A stretch of DNA of 64,000 bases, taken from contig OX337236.1 of assembly GCA_946965045.2 (NCBI GenBank), positions 2,480,001-2,544,000 on the forward strand, in the 5' to 3' direction. Shown here in pieces: positions 1,546 through 62,778 of this stretch. Positions within the stretch are counted from its first letter, which is position 1; every line of letters starts with the position of its first letter. A model generated the notes under the pieces. That model saw only the letters and a list, made by a program, of their open reading frames with translations. It made no database searches and was not told where the DNA came from. The stretch comes from Epithemia pelagica. Lineage: Eukaryota; Protista; Bacillariophyta. Made by a program: the position numbers and the translations under genes.

Positions 1546-2819
1546 TTAAGTCGCGGTATTCTCTTTGAGGTTCATGATGGCTTGGAAACAGTATCGGAAT
1601 AACACCATGTAATTGAAAAAGGGACCGAAGCAGGTTGATACCAACCATTTTGTCCACTCGACCTCTGTTCCCATGTGTATGAAGGGGCTAGAGAATTGTG
1701 ATGATTCATTGGGGTACCGGAGGTCCTTGTACATCTGTTGAACTGCTTTGACTATGACTACCTGTGTGTATCGGGGTATCCCTCCTACCCCAGAAGTCAA
1801 GTCAGGCCTGTATTGATTCAAGAGTAAGGCTCTTTGAACGATCATACAGAAACGCCACATATGAAATATTTATTGTTGGACTTCCAACAGACCCGAATAC
1901 TGACACATTCTCCATTTGAATTGCATGGTCGGAGGCAACCCTTACATACGATTGGAATATAAGTACATGTGCGATCCACAAGTTTATCATGGAGTTTCCC
2001 ATCGTGGTCGAAAATGCATTGTCGGCATTTGTATTCATTGCCACCTGTTTCGCATACATCACAATGTACCCCACAACCGTAACAATGGTCACGGCACCGG
2101 TGAGTAGTACCAAAAGGATGCCAGAATTTTCCTGTTAAATACCGATCGGTTGTTGGGTTATCTTGAAACAAACAAACTGGACAAATGGCATCTGCTATAT
2201 TCTCTGTAGAACCCAATACCTCGTTGGCAAGTCTGGTGAACTTAACCACTTCAGGGTGAAAGTCTGCATCTCGTTCACCAACTCGATCAGAATAACTCGG
2301 TGATTCCGGAGCCAATGGTATTGTCTTAAATTTCGCAGTGAACACAGAGGGGTCAATGATACGACTTTTGACCGCATATGGATTGCGAATGACCGTTTTC
2401 TTGGGATTAGTATGAGGAACGATAGTTGTATCGGGAATGGATGGTGGTACAACAACGTTACCAGGAGTCTCTGTTTTCTTTGGAGGCTCTGTTTTCTCGT
2501 GATGCCCTTCGACGGATATACCTGGTTCAGGAGAGCTGTCATCTACTACTCGTGGTACCAATTCGCCGACGTGGTTGCTGTTGTTATTTTTGTGATGTCC
2601 TTTATTCTCTTTCTGGAATTTCTCTTCTCTCAATTGAAATAAATCCTCGAGAAATGTGATGTCGCCGTCATTTTGGAACTGGGTTTCTTCTGGATGAAGA
2701 TTGTTTCCACGGCTTTCACTAAGTACCCCCTTGTTTTGTGGTTTGGTACTTTGTGGTTTTCGGCGTTTGTTGTATGGGTTCGTCATGGTGCGTGGTTTTT
2801 TGTATGGATTGCTCAACAT
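1546..2819 (-). pseudogene. Cys/His-rich hypothetical protein, probably a transposon accessory gene, with one frameshift near 1860
   Basis: ORF 1842-2819 has NPY repeats then many CxxC/His motifs (CPVC, CYGC, CDVC, CRQC, CKGC). ORF 1546-1860 overlaps it; adding one T in TATTTCATATG gives ...NKYFHMWRFC... and joins them. Confidence 0.5.
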
Positions 2820-3213
2820 TGCGTAAGCCAGAGAGTATTATCTCACCTCTTGTGTAAAAATGATTACTTGATGATCAAACAGAATAAACCTATCACATTC
2901 AAGAAAAAGAAGAGACGAGACATCTACTAAGATGTCTTTGTTTTTTTGTGAAGAATAATGGGTCGGCTGCCGTTTGTGGATACCACATGGACATCTATCT
3001 CATACTATCCCTCATCACGTGTCACTCTTTTTAATAAACGGAGTACCACTCCGACATGTTGGGGAGTATATTATTGGGACCACTTCTCTGAAATAAATAT
3101 TACGGATACCACTCGGACATCCCCCATGACCTTTGTTGGTGGTTGGAAACACACCCCCCCCCACCCCCACCCCCCCCCCTATTGGTTATACAGAACAACT
3201 TTCACTGACACCT

Positions 3214-6200
3214 TCATGATCCAGCAGTGTTACGATCTGTTGTTGTTGTTTGTGAAGGATCTGATGATGATGTATATCTTGCTCTCAACGAATCACTTGC
3301 TGAGTCATTGAACTCATTGGCCCATTTACTGGCAGGAAGTACCTCCCATACAATATCGGAATAGTTCCTGTGATTCCGAGTATATTCAAGCAATATTTCT
3401 CTTTCTGCATCAGAATGCAGGTATTCCGGTACCTTATCTCGGTGTTGGATCATTTCCGGGTTTTCATCAATCACTCCTACCAATTCAACTATATTGGTGA
3501 TAGGAACCAATACAAGATCGGGAACACGGGAATTCCGTGTAAAGGCCTTGCTCCATCGAATGAAAAGGACGGAGGACTTCTCTTTATCCTTGTCACTACG
3601 ACGATAAGTGGTTCGTAGTAAAGCATGTGTGACATCTCTCGGTTTTTCTTGGTGGATTCTTGATGTACGAGCATCATTTCCCTGTTCTTGCATGTGACCA
3701 GCACTTTCCCGTTGTTCCCATGGTCTGCCTATGAAGCATAAAACCTGACAGAGTACCAAGATATTGTCTGTTCCCTGATTACCTGTTGCAGTGTCAGTGA
3801 ATGGTGTTCGCTGGTGTCGTGGGATCCATGCTTTCACCCAGTCTCTCCAAGGACCCTCACTTTGGTAATTAGGATGACATCGGATACCACCTATGTTTTC
3901 GTCCCTGAATTTGACCTCTGTACACCCATGGATCATGATGTAATCACTTGTGTCATTCTGTTGTATAATATTCATTTGTGTGAAGAGTGCACTTGCATGT
4001 TTCACCAGAAAGTCAAGGATTACTTTTGGGAGGATCATACCGGTATTTGTTTTCGAAATATACTTGTAAGTACACTTGACCACGGGGCTCTCTGTCCGTC
4101 CAGATCTGACCAATTGGATTTGTATTGTTGTCCCTCGCCCCTTGAATTTACATCTATCTTCTTCATCGTCCTCGTCATCATTCTCATGACTATGATACAC
4201 TTGACTTCTTTTTTTCCTTGCCACAATGGTTGGAGATTGACCATTTTTTAGTAGCTCCACGTCATCTTGTTTGATCCCTGATGCTTTACAGAGCAGATCC
4301 CATGCCTGCATCTGCCATATGTTATCACCAAGTTGACTGTCGAAGACACCCTTACCCCGCTTTTGTACTGTTTTGGCATTCAGTTTGACAATTTCTTTGT
4401 GGTTACTCTCCTCTGATTCAGTGTCGGATATTTTAACTGGGCCGAAATTGGACACCTGTCGAACTATATGTACCAAGTTGTGGTATTTTGGGATCATCCA
4501 ACCATTGCACATCAGTTTCCCTTTTTTATCCAATCGTGGTGCATACCGCCGTATACCATCCATCATTATCTTGACAGATTCAACTGATCGTCGCGCTGTT
4601 TCCTTCGCGGCAGGAGAACGTGGGTCGCTATCCCAAAATCTATCCATCCTTGTCCAGCTGTTGAAACAGAGTATTGTCTCAAACAGGAAGAGGAAATCCA
4701 GATATGGTTCCCGCTCACCTTCATCCCAGATCGATGCATATGCCACAGGGTCATCGTCGAATACTGTTTCGCTCGTAACCTGTACCTCAATGTCAGGTTC
4801 ACAATATTGGTAATCTTCATTTTCCTGTACATGACCGGACAGATTGTCGTTGATATTTGTGGTTATTTCTTCGTTACTATCATCCACAGGTGAGTCATTC
4901 TCATCCGAATCGGATGAAGCATCAGCGATACTGTGGTGTACAATCGGTTTTTTTTTTATTGTCGTTGACGTTTATTGTTGGTAGAGGATACGTTGTTTTG
5001 TCCAGCGCCCATTCGTTGCCGTTTTTTCTTTTTTTTTCTAATTCATTTTTCTTTCTCTTCCGTTCTTTCTCTTCTTCCTTTTTTCTTTCGTCTCTCTTCT
5101 TCTTCTTTGCACCATTGTTTCCACTCTGCAACTACTTTTTTCCATTTCTCCGCCATAGTCGAAGCGAAAATAAGATGACCACGAACAGAAACACACAAAG
5201 CGGCTGAGACAAACATAATACCAACCCATTCATTGGCTGTTACCTTTGTAACATTACTGATACCTGCAGAGAAGGATGTTCTGGGGTACCCCCAACTAGA
5301 AGAATAAGAGAATACCGACTGTCGGTTGGCTCGGAAGAAAGAGCTGTACAAGAAATCAAACATGGCTTTTTCTCTCATTGTCATCAGAGCAAAGAAATCA
5401 GTCATGATATATTTCATGATCCCCGATTTCAAAGTATGTAATACATCACAACATGCCGCGGTAAAAATCCCATGTGTTTTATTAACACCCTCACCCAAAT
5501 ACAAATGGTTGTAGATGTTGTTCACTGGGTATTGTCCAATCTGATGTAAAATTTTCTTGGAATTGTTCACAGGTTCTCTCCAAGGATCCTCTCTCAGATC
5601 ATCTATACCGGGTTGTCCAGAATCGATAACTATTGGGTTTCCTGATGGTTTATCTAAACCAAGCACACGGAGGCTTCTGAAATGGATAGGGTTTTTGAAG
5701 AGGTAGTTGCATGTGGACCATGGGTATCTAGACTCCCGAGGTGTGCAATCACACTGCCAAACAAGCCGGCCAACACTTTGATGATGAGATGCATATCTTC
5801 CTGCGATGTTATCTTGTGACTTCGCATCTCCCTTTATCATGATCACGGGTAATACTAATCTCACCACCTTCTCAATCCCATGGATCCGTAATCGCATCCA
5901 CAATCCACCTCGATTCTGTATCTTCAAAAGAGCTTGGTGTATTCGCGAGAGCTGTGCATGATAATTCCGACAGGGGGACCCCCTATCCAAGATGTATTTG
6001 GCCGCAGATGACTTCCGTTCCATATCTGTGATCAACCCTAATATGATTTGTCTATTCGGTTTTCGCATTTCAGACATCGTCAAAAATGAAGGTACCATAA
6101 CAACTGGTTCCGCATTAAAGCGACCATCCCCTGTCGCGTGTGTCTTATCCATATAAGACAATAAACCAACAACGAAAGTATCGTTGTCATGTCTGTATTT

Positions 6201-22297: not shown

Positions 22298-25200
22298 ATG
22301 TCTAGACCGGAAAGATGCACCACGATTCACATCATGGAAAGAAAAGGAAGAAGAAGAGTTATATCGCTTGGAGCCACAAGAACAAACACAGAACCATGTC
22401 GTCGACTCTGTTCACGTGTCGCTCGACGAACCATTGGTCTGTCGTTGTTTTTATTGCTGTTACTCTGCACCGACACTGGTGCTGGTAAGGGTGTCAAGTT
22501 TTTGGCTCATGCCTTCTCTCCTTTTCCAACAACAACGATGAAACGGTTGCCTCGAACGCGTCATTGGATGGTATTGCGTCCACCTCCTCCTCCGTTCGCC
22601 TCGTCTCGCTCCGAACAAGAAGGCGGACGACGAAACAAGAATACTAGAAAGAAAAAGAGAAGGAACGAGGACCAGGCAACTTCAAATGATCAAGAGGAGA
22701 TCTCTGCAGCTCTTGATCCAGAGAATCTAACTTCTCTCCCCGGCGAAGAACAGCTCCAATTGTCTTCTCCCATTCGTGGTGACACTGGAGACAGCGAAAG
22801 AAGGAGGAGAGACGGGGATAACAAAAATGACAGGTCTGCTGATCAACCGTCGTCTGTGGATGGCACAACTATTCCTCCAGACACTGACAATGACGAACAC
22901 GATTTCATGATATGGAAGGTCAATGCTTCGGATGCCTTTGGTTCCATGTTGTTGCAAATGCAATCGACGTTTCAACCATCACAAGAACAAGAGAACAAGG
23001 GACAGTCTCCCATAGTGGGAGACCCTCAACAAATACTTTTGGACAAAAATGATCCTCGCGCCAGTGAATTCCTATTACAAGATGATGACCTGGAAAATGC
23101 CAAAGTGGTCGATGGGGATGAAGACTGGGTGACGACGGCCACCGCCAAAAATCCCCTGAATGATGAATTGCTGGAGAACGATCCACAAGCAACCATTGAT
23201 AGTGTTTCGGAAGACGACGGGGATGATCCCACTCTTGATAGCATGACAAAATCGGTTGTTACGGACTGCAAACATCGGTCCTTGACCACCATGACTGTAG
23301 AAATGGCCAAGGAGTTGGACGAAGCAGTGCTAGAAATTCCCCCCTTGCCCCAGACTGGTGCCGACAATACCAATGTCCTAGAAGAAGTTGATGTGCCTCC
23401 CATTTACCAAGATTCTGGCGACAAGGATTCTCTCGAACCAACGACTTCTACCCGAACGCCTCCTCCTTCTGTGACGGAAGATTATGTCGCCAATGACGAG
23501 TTGCGTCACGTAGCCTTGGGGGTAGCCAGTCGGACCGATTCTGTGGAAACCTGGTGCGAAACGGTAGCACCACAAATTGGGGGCATTTATCCATTGTTGG
23601 TGTCGATTCGCAAGGGTGCGGAGGCCCATCAACAAGAACTCGCCGCTGTGGCAGCAGTGGCAACAACGACGGGCACGGCTTCGTCGTCTATGACGACTGC
23701 TTTGGAGGAAGCCAGTCAGGCGTGTCGAGTTTTGCGTGATTTGTGTGGGTTGTCGTCTGATTTGGCCACTGTAGTCGTAGACTCGATAGTACGAGCCATT
23801 ACGACAGACCAAAGGTTAGCCAGCAAACGAGAGAATGAGGAAAGCAACCATCAACCGTTACACCAAGCCCTCTGGGATAGGCTTCACGGACCACGCCAGG
23901 AACCGGACTTGTTGCGGGATTTTGCAACCTTGTTGCAAAATGACGCCGATCCTGTTATACGGTTGCCCCAACCTCCATCCGGTGCGCATGTAGCAAATGA
24001 CGCCCAACGAAAATTATATGTATTGCAATTGCTATTGGCCATGTGTGTGGCAAGTGACTACGCCGTTCAAGCAATTCGTAACTATTCGGATTTAAAGAAT
24101 GAAATCATCGCATGTTCCTCTTATGCGTCCACAACTCCATATGCGAACAAGAAGAAGATTCGTCGGAATGGATACCAACTAAAAGCTGGACCCGTCCGTT
24201 GGGTGGAAGGACTGCAGCAACAATGGAGAAAACGCACTCGGAAACCAGAGGATGGAGAAGAGGCGGCCAAAGCTCTCACTGACGACAAGCCACAGTCTCC
24301 TCGTCACCAAACCTGGAAAAGTTCCGATTGGAAGAACTTAAATGGAGAAATACGCAAAACAGCGAATCAAGTTTTGGCGGCAATCGGGTAAGTGGGACTT
24401 TAGGGGTTGGCTGTTCTTGAACGTTGCTTTCTTGCTCACTCGATGGCCATCCTTTGATCATTTTCCTAGGTATAATAAGTGGGTTCCCAAACTTCCTGGA
24501 CAGCGTGGTTTGCGCATTCTATCTCTGGATGGAGGTGGATCTCGAGGAATGTCCGCGGTGACAGCTTTGCGTTGTCTCGTGGAACAGGTTGAAGGTAATC
24601 CAGAAGTTTGTGATGCCTTTGATTTTATTTGTGGAACATCCACAGGTGGTATTATCGCTTTCTTGACAGGCCTACGGCAAGAATCCAGTGCCAAGGCTAT
24701 GGAACGGTACAATGAATTGATTCAACAAATCTTTGTCAAGTCTGCCCTCAGTAAACCACTCATGCTGTTCACCACTGCCTCGTATGATGAATCGCACTTT
24801 ATGGGAATTTTATGCGATATTCTGAAGGATGACATTATGTTGGATAGTCGATCTGACCCCTCTGTTCCTTACGTCTTTGCGGTCTCCTCCAAAATGTCCT
24901 CGACTCCCACTCATGTGGCTCTCTTCCGAAATTACAATTATGCTTCGGGTGAATTGGCGGATCCCTTTGCGATAAGCCCAACTACGGCCCGTGAAGAGCT
25001 GAACCTACCTCTGGAAATGGAGCATCCGTCCATTCGGACGGGAGATTACGATACGACACTGATGGCTGCACCAGTCAACCCTCGAACCAACCCGAGAGGA
25101 GGGTCCCGACACCCGGGTTCGTTCCGTGTGTTGCAACGGTACGCCCTGCGAGCTTCGACGGCAGCCCCCACCTTTTTCAAACCTGTCATGATGGGCGGTG

Positions 25201-56682: not shown

Positions 56683-56825
56683 GATCGATACACGTATCGA
56701 TACATAAAGAATGTATCGATACACTAAAGAATGTATCGATACACTAAGGAATGTATCGATACATGTATCGATACATAAAGAATGTATCGATACGTGTATC
56801 GATACATTCTTTATGTACCGATACA
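56683..56825. repeat. Array of palindrome TGTATCGATACA (8 exact ATCGAT cores), ending in a perfect hairpin
   Basis: ATCGAT at 56684, 56696, 56715, 56735, 56755, 56767, 56786 and 56798. Arms 56772-56793 and 56796-56817 are exact reverse complements. Confidence 0.95.
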
Positions 56826-57141
56826 AAATCCTATATATCGCAAAGAGCATACATCCACCCGTCCGCTTCGCTTGTTAACACGAATGGCGATGAACTCTCC
56901 GGCCAAGCGATGCCCCTTCACCTTCATGGAGTGTTTGATGTGACAACGGCCCTCGTCCGGAAAGACACAACAATCAATCTGAAATTGTAAAAAGACCCTG
57001 CCCCCATCGAAACTACGAGACAACAGCATGCCGAAAACAGTTCCTGCGGAAGTGAAAGGAGCTCGAGCTTTGCACTTCCTCCAATCAATCCATCCTGCTT
57101 TTTTGGGCGCCATTGTCACTTTTTGTTTGATTGTTCACTTA

Positions 57142-57309
57142 CATGTATCGATACATGTATCGATACACAAAGAATGTATCGATACACGTATCGATACACA
57201 AAGAATGTATCGATACACTGAAGAATGTATCGATACACTGAAGAATGTATCGATACTAATATCGATACATAAAGAATGTATCGATACACTGAAGAATGTA
57301 TCGATACAT
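57142..57309. repeat. Second TGTATCGATACA array (10 ATCGAT cores, ~20-bp unit AAGAATGTATCGATACACTG)
   Basis: ATCGAT at 57147, 57159, 57178, 57190, 57209, 57229, 57249, 57261, 57280 and 57300. Confidence 0.95.
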
Positions 57310-57668
57310 TTACTATTGTGTTTTAAGTACCTGAGACATTTTCCCGGACCTTTGAATTCTTCTATTATACTGTACCCCATGAAATGTTTCTGTACTATTT
57401 TGCTAGGTAACCAAAACTACGATACCTAGTATACGAGTAGACCTTAACCTCCTATGATACCTTTGTCATCGAAAATCGAAAAGGTCCAAGACGATGTTGC
57501 CTACTAGGGTCGACAACAAAATTGTTCCTTGGCTACAAATATCATAGGTGTCCCAGAGACTTCAGACGCGCGACAGAAACATATTATGGGGTAGTTCAGT
57601 CCTGAAACGATTGTTCATCACTCTACCATCTACCCTCTAAGGTTAGCCGAGGAAAAGTTCGAAAGGGA

Positions 57669-57872
57669 TGCGGTACCCGGACTCTGTCCCGCCACGACTC
57701 CACGTAAACATGACTCGATAGGTCCCTAGTTGAATCTTTGACACCGACGTTCTCAGAATTCAGTCCGTCCTTGTCCCGTGTGCAGATGGCTTCTCTGGCC
57801 ATCGCTCACTTTCCTAGCCTAATTCCTAAAGATCATAATTTTTACGTCCTACCATTATGCATGGGTATGGCA
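57669..57872 (+). repeat. 5' LTR
   Basis: No differences seen from 62106-62309 on base-by-base reading. Confidence 0.97.
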
Positions 57873-58009
57873 CTCTGATAAGATTCCTCAACGCCCTTGT
57901 TTTTCCTTCTTCACCATAACACGCCTCAGGCGGCCGACGTTTGTGCAATTCCTTTTGCCCGTCCTTTGATTCCTTTCCTTTCATTTTCTCACCATTGCAT
58001 ATCTCCATC

Positions 58010-61000
58010 ATGGCAGACAACACCAATGGGTTCATTACCCTTGTCGATGCACTCCGCTTCCAACGTCGCGTTGATGAGGCTCTGTCCTCCGATTCCTTTT
58101 CCGCTCTCAAGCTCAAAGATGACGACGACAAGTATTACGCCAACCTCCTCCCATTTCGGGAGTCGACGGATGAAGATCCTCGCAATCTCTTTCTTTGGGT
58201 CCTCCACTTCGTGGACAAGATCCGCATCTCCGGTCATCCGGATCCCTTCGCCGCTTGTTGCGAGTATTTCCCTCGCTCGGTCACCAGCGCTATCGCCGAT
58301 CCTTTTCTCGAAGCCTACAACGGTTTGCCTCCAGGCACCAATCTCGATGAAGCCTGCTTCCAAGGTTTGATTGCTGCGGTCTTCGCCCCCCTTGTCCTTG
58401 TCAGTGAAGTTAGTGCTTTCCGCACCTTCCTTCTTTCTGGGCCTCGGAAGCCCTCAGACATGACAGTGGACTCGCATCTGCAGTCCCTTCGCAAGTTTTC
58501 AAACGGTCTCAAATACCTCAGCTCCGACGCTGCAATCGTCCCCCTCACGGAAGACAAACTCAAACAAGCCTTTTACCAAGGCTCGCCAACAACATGGCGC
58601 ACGGAATTTCAACAAGCCAATCCCTTGGTGCCGGACATTGTCAATCACTTTGACACGGCTGCTCTCTTGCAAGCCATGCGCGGATACCAGCGCGCCTCCA
58701 AGCAAAAGGCCCTACAACGTGAGCAACAGCAAAATCGTTCGCAGTCTCGCCAAGACCGCTCTCGTCCTCGCGACTCCAACAACAGCGGCAATCGCGATCG
58801 TCGCGTGCGCTCTCGCCAATCTCGTGGTGGACTCCGCGGTGGCAATCGTGATTCCTCACGTGGCGGAAATCGCCGTGGCTCCTCCGACCGTAACGACTCC
58901 TCCGGAGACAATCGTGGCGCCTCCGATGGCAACTCCGATCCCTGTCCGTATCGGACCACGATGGAATCCCATCGCAACCATTCTTGGGCTGATTGCATTT
59001 ATAATCCTACGGGTCGCAATTTCAATCAAAGCCTTTTTGACGTCATGGTTCAACGTTCTAACCGTTCTACCAGTGGCGGCAACGCCGGAAACAATCCTCC
59101 TCAAGGTGGTGGTTCCAATGGCAATAACAACCCGCGTGGTGGCTCTTCCGCTCCTCTGCGTGCCACTTGGGGCTCTCGTCCTTCTGCCCCAGGTCGTGGC
59201 AGTGATCAAGACGCCTCTGACTCTGCTGGTGCCGGCAATGGATGGAATGCCGTTCCTGCCAATCCTCCTGCCGTAGCTCCTCCTCCAGGATGCGTTCCTA
59301 CCATTCCTGTCGATGCCGAGGGAATCCAGCAGTGGAGCGATCTTCGCAATCCTGAAAAGACAGTCCCCGGTACGTCTCACCTTTCATCTTCCTTTTCCTT
59401 GTCTCCTGACGATCAGACTCATCACCTGGACATTTTGTTCTCGCAGCAATGTCAGATCCAAACTGGCCCGCCAACGGCTATGCCGGCAGCGCAATCCATC
59501 CCGATGCACCCATCAACGAGGTCATCGACCAGCTCAATAAAATCTATGGGCGCGGAATGGACATTTCCCACATCTACAACCTGTCCACCCAAGGAGGTCT
59601 CGCTGCTTACACCCGCGTCTCTATGTCGTGATGACGCTTTTATAAGCGAGGTGATTGATCCTAATAACGGTTACTTGGATAACCTAGAGTCTTATGATGA
59701 GTTCTACTCCCAATTTCCTTCATCTAGTGATGTTCATTCGTTAGATTCGCCTTCTCGGCCTGAATGCATTCCACTCACCATCGTCATGGCTCGCCATATT
59801 GGCGGTGTTGAGAATACGCTTCCCTTGCGTGCCCTGCTCGATTCAGGCGCTGACAAGACGATTCTTCATTCACGTTGCCTTCAACCAGGCATGATACCGC
59901 GGTCTACCGACCGTTCCGTGAACACGACCATGGGAACTCGTTCTGGTGTGTCCGAAATTCTCCTGGAAGACATTGTTCTCCCAGAGTTCTCACGAACCAA
60001 ACACGTAACCTATCCCTTATGGGTCGACATCTATGATGCTCCCAACAGTCGCTATGATATCATCATCGGTCGCAATTTGCTTCGCCGTCTGGGCGTCCTT
60101 CTTGATTTCGATCGTGGGATCTCCTCGTGGGACTCCATTGAAGTCGCTATGCGCGACCGCGATTCATTCGCGACTGAACATGAGTTCGTCTCGCATTTCA
60201 TCGATCTCTTCGCAGATGATGACGTCCTCGGTGACGATTACCTGCTTGATTCAAATTACAAACAGGCAGATCTCGATGAGCTTCTTGCTCAACAGACTCA
60301 TCTGACGCCCTCACAACAACAAGATCTTCTTGGTGTGTGGCTGAAATGCGGGCGCATCTTTGATGGCGTCCTGCGTGCCTATCCGGACAAAGAGTTGCAT
60401 CTCGATCTCATGCCCGATGCCAAACCGGCTCATCATCGTCATTATGCGGTCCCTCGCAATATCCATGACACCTTTAAAAAGGAATTGTTTCGGTTTGTCG
60501 ATATCGGCATTCTCGAACGAGTTGGTTCCACTGAGTGGGCCGCTCCTCATTTCGCCATTCCTAAAAAGGATGGACGAATCCGAATGATCTCGGACTTTCA
60601 TTCGCTTAATGCGCAAATGTACCGCCGCATCTATCCCTTTCCAAGGATCGAAGATATCCTTCGACGACGCAAAGGCTACAAGTATTTCACAAAACTTGAC
60701 ATCTCTACGTGTTTTCACACTTTCAAACTCGACGAGTTTTCCAGCAATCTTTGCGTTATCACTACGCCTTTTGGCAAATTTCGCTATCGACGTCTCCCTA
60801 TGGGAGTTAAGCAATCCCCAGACTTCTGTCAGGAGCTCATGGAAGAAGTCCTCGCTGACTTTCGCAATCACGTCGAGGTCTACATCGACGATATCGGCGT
60901 CTTTTCCGACAGTTGGGAAGAACATGTCGAGATTCTCAACAAAGTCCTTCAACGTCTTCAAGACAAGAACTTTTCTATCACTCCTCACAAATGTGAATGG

Positions 61001-61213
61001 GCCGTGCAGGAAACCAACTTCCTTGGCCATTGGCTCACGCCTACAGGTCTACGACCATGGAAGAAAAAGATTTCCGCGACTCCGCGATACTATCGCCATG
61101 CACATGACGCATCCCCAATTGGGACTCTACTGCGATCAAGCTGTTTCCAGCTGTCCGACCTGTCAACGGTCGAAGGTCGTTCATCGACATTACGGAAAAT
61201 TGCCTCCTCGTGA
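58010..61213 (+). pseudogene. gag-protease-RT polyprotein, truncated after RT (RNase H deleted)
   Basis: Gag CPY...H..H.W..C..NP knuckle; protease ALLDSGA; RT WAAPHFAIPKKDGRIR, KLDIS and YIDDIGVFS. Reading becomes junk after PWKKKISA (~61078). Confidence 0.92.
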
Positions 61214-62018
61214 GGTCCGTGGTAATCCCTGGTCCGACATTGCCGTCGATCTTATCGGCCCCTGGACAGTCAAAGTCCATGGCATGGCCCTGACCTTTCA
61301 GGCTCTGACGGTCATTGACACTGTCACCAATTTTTGCGAGATTATCCGCATATACGATAAAACCGCTCGACATGTTGGTCTCCAACTCGAGAATTCATGG
61401 CTTTCACGCTATCATCGCCCTGTTCGTTGCCTTTTCGATCAAGGCGGCGAGTTCATCGGCCATGCGTTTACGCAAGTGCTTCGCAATCATGGCATCAAGC
61501 CAGTGCCCCTAACGGTCAAAAATCCACAATCCAATGCCCTATGTGAACGTCTTCATTTGACGATTGGCAATTCATTACGCGCTATCGTTAACTACGAGCC
61601 GCCGCAAAACATTGATCAGGCCGCTCTTATGGTCGACACTGCTCTGCAAACCGCTGCATACTCTGCACGCACTGCCATCCACGGCAGCCTCAAACATTCT
61701 CCCGGCAGTCTTGCGTTCCACCGCGACATGCTGTTCGACATTCCCATCCTTGCGGACATGGAATTGATTCGTCAAAAACGCCAAATCATCGTTGACGAAC
61801 GAGCTCGACTCGCAAATCGCTCTCGCGTCTTTCATGACTACAAGATTGGAGATCGCGTGCTCATCCGCGCTACCAATCCGGACAAATTGGCACCTCGTAC
61901 CAGTCCCAATCCTTTCACTATCACGCGTGTCCATTCCAATGGCACCGTGACCATTCAACGTGGTCCCCACGTTACCGAGCGCATCAATATCCGGCGTCTC
62001 ATCCCTTACCGTGTGTGA
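61075..62018 (+). pseudogene. Integrase, N-terminally truncated and out of frame with pol
   Basis: RLRDTIAMH...CPTCQ, PWSDIAVDLIGPW, FDQGGEF, NPQSNALCERLH, C-terminal GPY/F-like module ending INIRRLIPY. Confidence 0.92.
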
Positions 62019-62105
62019 CATGGGTTTTACTGCCGTTGGCCTCTGGCCATCAAGCTTTCCCATGGCCCGCTCGAACTTCCTAGGTCCGACCAGGGAGAGG
62101 TAGAG

Positions 62106-62309
62106 TGCGGTACCCGGACTCTGTCCCGCCACGACTCCACGTAAACATGACTCGATAGGTCCCTAGTTGAATCTTTGACACCGACGTTCTCAGAATTCAG
62201 TCCGTCCTTGTCCCGTGTGCAGATGGCTTCTCTGGCCATCGCTCACTTTCCTAGCCTAATTCCTAAAGATCATAATTTTTACGTCCTACCATTATGCATG
62301 GGTATGGCA
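62106..62309 (+). repeat. 3' LTR
   Basis: No differences seen from 57669-57872. Confidence 0.97.
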
Positions 62310-62778
62310 AGGGAAGTGTACATTACAGAAGATGTTTTTGGGCGTATAGGTATGATCTGGCTATCTAAATCGTTCTAATCACTACTCCTAATAATCTACC
62401 TCTAGCTAGAACTAGAGTAGTAGTAGAGATGAACTCTACCTGTGGTAGCAATGATTTTTTTCATTCCCGGGTAGTAGTATTGAATATGCGTTCTCGCTAA
62501 GGCGTAAATCTCTGATTTCTCTACGACTCCGCGTCTATTTCCAGGTATGAATTTTAGCTAATGGCGTAGTGAGTCATATCCTTTCAGTCACGGAATTCAT
62601 ATCGCGCTGAGAGTTAATCAAGAAGTTTTGGCCGGGAATCCAACTCCTTGCGGGGGTGAGGCTAAACACAATTACACAGTCGTAGCTTCCCCCGATAGGG
62701 CGTGTCAGGGAGACGTGCCAAAACGGCGCCCTGAGTCACTTTTCTTAGAAACCGGAAGTGCGAACACAAAGAAAAAAA

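Follow-up and report, generated by a model that had tools for sequence, protein, structure and literature searches.

How a retroelement that encodes Gag and Pol in one open reading frame (ORF) produces more Gag than Pol is an old question, for which the Ty3/gypsy record offers frameshifting, stop read-through or protein turnover. The question is raised here by a long terminal repeat (LTR) retrotransposon of the diatom Epithemia pelagica, located at 57669-62309 (4,641 bp) of a 64,000-nucleotide stretch of contig OX337236.1 (the window), which contains a candidate intron at the end of gag. The reading favoured here, with a probability of roughly 0.82, is that this gypsy element carries an optional intron: unspliced RNA would give Gag-Pol, spliced RNA would give Gag with a conserved tail, and the spliced fraction would set the ratio of the two. 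A Copia-style splicing switch of this kind, combined with an overprinted Gag tail, would be new for Ty3/gypsy elements, while the switch itself is known from Copia.

Intron signals and reading frames of the window copy

The main ORF of the element extends over 57941-61213, with an ATG at 58010, and encodes gag, an aspartic protease and a reverse transcriptase, followed by an integrase in another frame. An earlier note, made from the letters of the window alone, had proposed that a 77-nucleotide (nt) intron lies hidden within this frame at 59370-59446, and both its size and its signals were confirmed. The donor GT occupies 59370-59371 in the context CCCCG/GTACGT, the motif CCTGAC lies at 59405-59410 in a pyrimidine-rich body, and the pyrimidine-rich 3' end TTTTGTTCTCGCAG closes with the acceptor at 59446. 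In the near-identical copy L038 the intron is 36% T and 35% C.

The last base of exon 1, at 59369, is also the first of a codon, which makes this a phase-1 intron. Its removal joins G to CA to form an alanine codon, after which the ORF at 59449-59628 is entered, reading ...A-MSDPNWPANGY...RVSMS before TGA TGA (59629-59634). The predicted Gag therefore has the 514 residues given in the note (453 + 1 + 60). On unspliced RNA the main ORF is open throughout the intron and gag and pol share one frame. Read-through to protease and reverse transcriptase, also claimed, holds for the window copy, but there it stops short of RNase H and of an in-frame integrase owing to a deletion. The intron, its effect on the frame, the dual-coded segment and the alternative outcomes of Gag and Gag-Pol thus all stood up to analysis, and are conserved far beyond the window copy.

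Conservation of the intron in copies and relatives

The genome that was searched comprises 60.5 Mb in 23 contigs, the window being C9:2480001-2544000. At least 15 further copies of the same family (family A) were found at 90–99% identity to the window copy, the full-length copies being approximately 5.7 kb. Seven of the family-A copies have an open frame of 1,719 codons, or 1,689 residues from the ATG, that passes through the intron and encodes Gag, protease (PR), reverse transcriptase (RT), RNase H (RH) and integrase (IN). Approximately seven copies of a second family, B, have open frames of 1,700–1,704 codons that also pass through the intron. The GT and AG are kept in all aligned intron-bearing family-A copies (16/16). 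Family B shares approximately 67% nucleotide identity with family A and 54% amino acid identity in Gag. Its intron, G/GTATGT...TTTTTGCTCAG/CAATG, is 74 nt long, and the main frame is open throughout while the alternative-frame tail is exactly 60 residues.

The nearest relatives of pol outside this genome were two elements of Epithemia clementina (L058, L059), a Logan contig (L057) and the metagenome scaffolds L060, L063, L064 and L066. All seven contain a phase-1 intron at the homologous site, with GTGAGT, GTACGT, GTATGT or GTATGA as donor, and these include L057, the Gag of which is only 28% identical. The only relative with an unclear intron was L065. The seven introns measure 77, 77, 89, 86, 95, 92 and 77 nt, and an intron length of 2 modulo 3 is found in 9/9 elements when families A and B are included. 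Across the nine, a stop follows 6–122 codons past the junction, so that splicing would shift the frame and leave pol untranslated, as in copia-type elements. Conservation of the splice sites and of both frames had been named in the note as a check, and it was found in family B, in the phase-1 introns of the outside relatives and, for the tail, in four lineages.

In 6/8 elements a strong donor hexamer is placed 41–65 nt upstream of an HHLD motif; the probability of this placement would be approximately 1e-10 for independent elements, a value that is overstated since the elements are homologous. The Gly codon is followed by T where the donor is GTACGT, by M where it is GTATGT and by E where it is GTGAGT, while the flanking residues differ. 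That the residue at this position tracks the donor variant argues for a constraint on the RNA signal rather than on the protein.

The HHLD motif is itself encoded within the intron, in the main frame (codons 59420-59431), and many relatives also have HHL(D/N) at this place in their Gag-Pol, after gag and before protease, where the 3' part of the intron encodes it. Homologous sites were located in L052, L057-L060 and L063-L066. Since the intron lengths differ by multiples of three and the intron encodes this conserved motif, the retained form appears to be translated as well. HHL(D/N) may be a protease cleavage or docking site.

The NCBI protein ACA910_021659 (P0064), which derives from the E. 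clementina copy L059, reads ...TVP-A-MSSPDWP..., from which it follows that precisely the homologous 77 nt are spliced out as an intron in the public annotation. An apparent host intron near 24390-24470 of the window, read from the sequence, is approximately 82 nt long with TTGAT approximately 16 nt before the AG, a placement that resembles the introns of the family-B and E. clementina elements.

The 60-residue tail

All 60 residues of the tail align without gaps among family A, family B, E. clementina and L057, and 18 positions are invariant. In these 180 nt the amino acid identity is 40–72% in the alternative frame compared to 25–51% in the main frame, and the invariant nucleotide columns are distributed over alternative-frame codon positions 1, 2 and 3 as 25, 32 and 11 (chi-square p = 0.006). 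The ratio of non-synonymous to synonymous substitution (dN/dS) between families A and B came to 0.36 for the alternative frame, against 0.68 for the main and 2.7 for the third. Judged by these alignments, the tail is real coding sequence and the main frame is a loosely constrained Gag-Pol linker before the protease, rich in Ser, Thr and Pro, which only needs to stay open.

An AlphaFold model of the tail, built on a five-sequence alignment, contained two helices with a predicted local distance difference test score (pLDDT) of 78.5. The tail gave no Pfam family and no useful ESM Atlas match, and its model gave no fold match in the PDB. Gag was also used for searches: a word search matched only the assembly of the same species, and a profile search returned mostly short fragments, the three contigs examined either falling short of the gag-pol boundary or having no pol. 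A scan of JGI metagenomes for relatives of the tail was blank, which carries little weight. Beyond the splice junction, the distant relatives reach a stop in the new frame after 6, 41, 59 or 122 codons of unrelated sequence, suggesting that the frame shift and stop are ancient and that the 60-residue tail was a later addition.

One nucleotide stretch is here read in two frames, by Gag and by Gag-Pol, an overlap with a layout like that of p6/p6*. In human immunodeficiency virus type 1 (HIV-1), p6 and p6* share approximately 200 nt in two frames and are laid out similarly, with a small C-terminal domain in Gag and a loosely constrained linker before the protease in Gag-Pol. The frame in HIV-1 is switched by a -1 ribosomal frameshift on one RNA, whereas here intron removal would yield two RNAs. 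The change of frame comes from the removal of 77 nt and not from a ribosomal change of frame at a slippery site; as gag and pol share a frame on unspliced RNA, no ribosomal shift is needed (no search for slippery sites was made).

Intronless copies in the same genome

Two full-length copies, L031 on C10 and L032 on C16, lack exactly the 77 nt of the intron, leaving CCCCG/CAATG, and are otherwise colinear with the other copies. Each has two LTRs and its own 5-bp target-site duplication (CCATA and GCGTT), and they are therefore true integrations. In structure they look like retrocopies of spliced RNA. The exon-exon junction was not found in any further copy of either family by a genome-wide pattern search. 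Approximately 20 family-A and 25 family-B copies retain the intron, which indicates that the RNA that is reverse-transcribed is normally unspliced.

Several other candidate loci were rejected. In L033 (G000:C7:1281000-1288500, minus strand) the end of gag is joined to a copy of the junction sequence that lies in pol, near locus position 4634-4651, with approximately 1.75 kb deleted. This is consistent with a template switch of the reverse transcriptase on an 8-nt or 18-nt repeat, and because one such switch suffices, L033 was not counted as evidence of splicing. A junction match with two mismatches on C11 proved to be unrelated sequence, and another at C7:1701601 was a pol fragment. Two family-B copies on C18 and C3 in which the tail is in frame with a long ORF simply have deletions of 1 nt and 7 nt inside the overlap. 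These deletions, in L049 (C18:124000-133000, near 4040) and L050 (C3:3257000-3266000, minus strand), break the main frame and would place pol in frame with the spliced Gag tail. A similar fusion of tail and pol, following loss of the tail stop, was observed in L059 of E. clementina.

A copy of the exon-exon junction in pol

The pol of every intact family-A and family-B copy contains a contiguous 16-18-mer, GGTCCCCGCAATGTCA(GA), identical to the end of exon 1 joined to the start of exon 2. It lies 1.8 kb downstream (L038:3973-3990, L052:5403-5418), where it codes for WSPQCQ in the connection between RT and RNase H, and it is deleted in the window copy. The relatives from E. clementina and the metagenomes have WTPACQ or WTSECQ encoded by different bases at this site, and none of them has the junction mimic. 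The A/B site differs from theirs at five bases, all of them toward the junction sequence. The odds are roughly even that, in the ancestor of families A and B, reverse transcription copied this short patch from spliced RNA, and the mimic would then be evidence of splicing in its own right. The 16-18-mer may also be functional.

Proposed mechanism and alternative explanations

In the mechanism proposed, intact copies would encode one Gag-PR-RT-RH-IN polyprotein of 1,689 residues, with a short spliceosomal intron at the gag-pol boundary that is used optionally. Unspliced RNA would act both as genomic RNA and as Gag-Pol mRNA, the intron being translated together with its HHLD and the next 183 nt serving as linker. 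In spliced RNA the loss of 77 nt, which is 2 modulo 3, would bring the ribosome into the other frame, where it would add the 60-residue C-terminal Gag tail and stop at TGA TGA, and pol would become 3' untranslated sequence. The spliced fraction would then set the excess of Gag over Pol, replacing the frameshifting or stop read-through of other gypsy elements.

The ORFs and the structure of the copies show unspliced RNA to be both the source of Gag-Pol and the genome. For spliced RNA the sequence shows how the frames lead to Gag with its tail and then to a stop; that such an RNA exists is suggested by the retrocopies, and splicing in vivo has indirect support from the two intronless integrated copies and the public E. 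clementina gene model. We infer that both RNA forms are translated and that the tail has a role; that intron retention sets the Gag:Pol ratio would follow by analogy with BARE1 and EVD.

A number of observations weigh against splicing. The bare pattern is not rare, as alternative-frame ORFs of at least 50 residues are common inside the main ORF, and strong donor-like hexamers occur 2–5 times per 5-kb ORF. Given the tail sequence and an intron poor in A and G, the main frame staying open is weakly improbable (P 0.2–0.67 per lineage, by resampling). L031 and L032 are old and degraded, with LTR pairs 98.5% identical and many frame breaks, and since they are sister copies (100/100 support) they record a single loss of the intron, after which at least two integrations took place, and not two losses. 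The predicted spliced mRNA would have more than 3.5 kb of 3' untranslated sequence, and the gene model of ACA910_021659 may be RNA-guided or ab initio. The natural intronless ORF (L031:2530-2886) gave no match as a word-search query, nor did a scan of JGI metagenomes for the exact spliced junction, although both blanks carry little weight. The duplicate of the junction in pol would also allow the intron to be lost without splicing, through two template switches. What raises the finding above chance is the conservation together with the two copies with precise intron loss.

The splicing-free route would make the GT...AG incidental, derive L031 and L032 from two template switches through the pol 16-18-mer, and leave the alternative ORF conserved for some other reason. 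It is favoured by the presence of the mimic in all intact A and B copies, by L033, which shows that the repeat does mediate deletion, and by the single event to which the intronless copies trace. It needs, however, two precise jumps on homologies of 10 nt and 8 nt, and it does not account for the nucleotide-level preservation of the donor consensus in relatives without the pol mimic, for the phase and the 2-modulo-3 rule, for the codon-position signature of a tail that is reachable from gag only by intron removal, or for the E. clementina gene model. As it explains none of the conservation, it was rated very improbable. The same conservation bears on the possibility that the 60-residue ORF is a separate small protein, started from its own ATG (59449) on full-length or subgenomic RNA, with the intron signals irrelevant. 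Met1 of the ORF, 2 nt past the acceptor, is indeed invariant in five sequences and the ORF is under constraint at the protein level, but internal initiation approximately 1.4 kb into a eukaryotic mRNA, past many ATGs, is unlikely, and no promoter was seen, although none was sought. Four relatives (L060, L063, L064, L066) keep the intron without a conserved ORF led by an ATG, and nothing would explain why the phase-1 donor is conserved, why intron lengths follow their rule or how the intronless retrocopies arose; this explanation was rated very improbable as well.

It could also be supposed that the intron is removed constitutively and that Pol is made from spliced RNA by +1 frameshifting near TGA TGA, the continuous ORF being incidental. 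Such an arrangement is known in some gypsy elements, and according to Chang et al. (2013; PMC3735527) +1 frameshifting is the mode of most gypsy elements. Against this, the intron is present in nearly all genomic copies, copies with identical LTRs among them, which makes unspliced RNA the packaged form; its lengths differ by multiples of three and it encodes HHLD, so the retained form appears to be translated; and the tails of the relatives, 6–122 codons long, end in unrelated ways that leave no conserved shift site. The chance that this is the correct account is considered slight. Optional splicing, with both forms used, therefore remains the preferred reading. A broader view, held with only a little more confidence than its opposite, is that a whole clade of Ty3/gypsy elements with a single ORF, from diatoms and marine metagenomes, swapped recoding for an ancient facultative intron, converging on the shGAG arrangement of Copia elements; that one subclade acquired a conserved, folded, overprinted, Gag-only domain of 60 residues; and that the pol copy of the junction in families A and B is either a recombination fossil or a functional element.

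Structure and classification of the element

The features of the window copy, all on the plus strand, are as follows.

57664..57668, +, target-site duplication AGGGA, left copy, 5 bp; the same pentamer follows the 3' LTR
57669..57872, +, 5' LTR, 204 bp, with TG...CA ends; 100% identical to 62106-62309
58010..59369, +, gag exon 1, 453 codons and the first base of the split codon
59370..59446, +, putative facultative 77-nt phase-1 intron; donor GTACGT 59370-59375, CCTGAC 59405-59410, acceptor AG 59445-59446
59447..59634, +, dual-coded segment; the alternative frame 59449-59628 gives the predicted 60-residue Gag tail, then TGA TGA
59822..60103, +, aspartic protease domain in the main frame (PF00077 RVP, residues 63-156 of ORF 59636-61210)
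60557..61033, +, reverse transcriptase domain in the main frame (PF00078 RVT_1, E 1.5e-30)
61075..61082, +, breakpoint where 1,075 bp of the full-length copies have been deleted internally; element positions 3407-3414 are common to both flanks
61296..61526, +, integrase core, in a different frame in the window copy, ORF 60609-62018 (PF00665 rve)
62092..62105, +, polypurine tract adjoining the 3' LTR, read from the sequence
62106..62309, +, 3' LTR, 204 bp, identical to the 5' LTR
62310..62314, +, target-site duplication AGGGA, right copy

The element has direct LTRs with TG...CA ends and a short target-site duplication, and across 15 copies the LTR ends are TGCGG...GGCA with duplications of 5 bp. 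Full-length copies contain LLDSGAD, YIDDIG, RT_RNaseH and rve in the order PR-RT-RNase H-IN, and a 98%-identical protein (P0059) matched Pfam PF00078, PF17917/PF17919 and PF00665. By these sequence features the element is a Ty3/gypsy (Metaviridae) LTR retrotransposon. Exon 1 of gag matched no Pfam family; it contains a conserved N-terminal capsid-like region and a C-x-H-x-W-x2-C knuckle-like motif, and distant Gag relatives were found. No primer-binding site of the TGG type was evident directly after the 5' LTR (57873-57900), where no tRNA match was attempted.

The internal deletion of the window copy takes out the end of RT, the pol junction mimic and RNase H, and shifts the frame of the integrase. 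Because of this 1,075-bp loss of the RT end and RNase H the window copy is a young non-autonomous deletion derivative, and since its LTRs are nevertheless 100% identical, it must have been mobilised recently in trans. Another copy, L034, is also deleted internally, but elsewhere (from 2361 to 3459 in full-length coordinates). Upstream of the element, at 56684-57358, there are arrays of a unit containing ATCGATACA, arranged as direct repeats with spacings of 20, 31 and 51 nt in two blocks approximately 460 nt apart; these arrays may be the subterminal repeats of a DNA transposon.

Comparison with known systems

A frameshift and stop induced by splicing, giving a Gag-only RNA, is known from copia, BARE1, EVD and other Arabidopsis Ty1/Copia elements (PMC3735527, PMC5580714). 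The background statement of the earlier note, that spliced Gag mRNAs are better known from copia elements, is correct: the strategy is documented for Ty1/Copia and not for Ty3/gypsy (PMC3735527, PMC5580714), and Oberlin et al. (2017; PMC5580714) report no such conserved splicing in Arabidopsis Ty3/Gypsy elements.

The barley Ty1/Copia element BARE1 (PMC3735527) also has a single gag-pol ORF with a small optional intron, of 104 nt, at the end of gag, and splicing shifts the frame to a stop so that a nearly full-length spliced RNA encodes Gag only. It differs in its PR-IN-RT-RH order, its superfamily and the kingdom of its host. The BARE1 stop is reached three codons past the junction, compared to a conserved overprinted tail of 60 residues here, and BARE1 splicing was demonstrated on RNA whereas here it is deduced from DNA. 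EVD and related Arabidopsis elements with shGAG (PMC5580714) likewise have conserved splice sites, require intron retention for Gag-Pol and gain a dedicated Gag mRNA through a splice-induced frameshift and stop. The introns of EVD-type Copia elements are long and cover the protease, while those described here are 74–95 nt and lie upstream of it; EVD-type splicing is also coupled to premature polyadenylation (PMC5580714). The 2-kb Gag mRNA of Drosophila copia, as Yoshioka et al. (1990) are cited in PMC5580714 and PMC3735527, is a spliced subgenomic RNA that gives excess Gag, and by the same secondary accounts the splice removes almost all of pol (approximately 3 kb) compared to 77 nt here.

Ty3/gypsy elements are described as producing Gag-Pol by -1 frameshifting, by read-through of an in-frame stop, or from a single ORF as in Tf1/Tf2 (bioRxiv 10.1101/2022.12.06.519325). 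The unspliced form of the present element resembles a single-ORF gypsy element; for those such as Tf1 no switch at the RNA level is described, and the present clade would add one. The element shares with copia, BARE1 and EVD a continuous gag-pol ORF and canonical, conserved splice sites at the end of gag, but its PR-RT-RH-IN order places it outside Ty1/Copia: the strategy works alike, and the element is not one of them. In Ogre, a legume Ty3/gypsy element, the intron reportedly separates pol domains and its removal fuses ORFs, whereas here removal ends the ORF. Ogre is alike in having a functional spliceosomal intron in its coding region, as Steinbauerova et al. (2008) are cited in PMC12786077. 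A paper on diatom retrotransposons that names the GyDi elements mentions no intron, and full-text literature searches, with subscription journals outside their coverage, returned no prior description of a splice-made Gag-only mRNA for Ty3/gypsy elements or for diatoms.

Implications

The finding offers a concrete RNA-level switch for diatom gypsy elements, which seem to have come to the same solution independently of Ty1/Copia. As a natural example of overprinting, it also shows a Gag-only domain written over a Gag-Pol linker. Gene callers either fuse such elements into one ORF or splice them, as in the E. clementina annotation, and knowledge of the optional intron would aid the annotation of transposons in algal genomes, where an intron that is present together with two open frames may serve as a marker for active copies.

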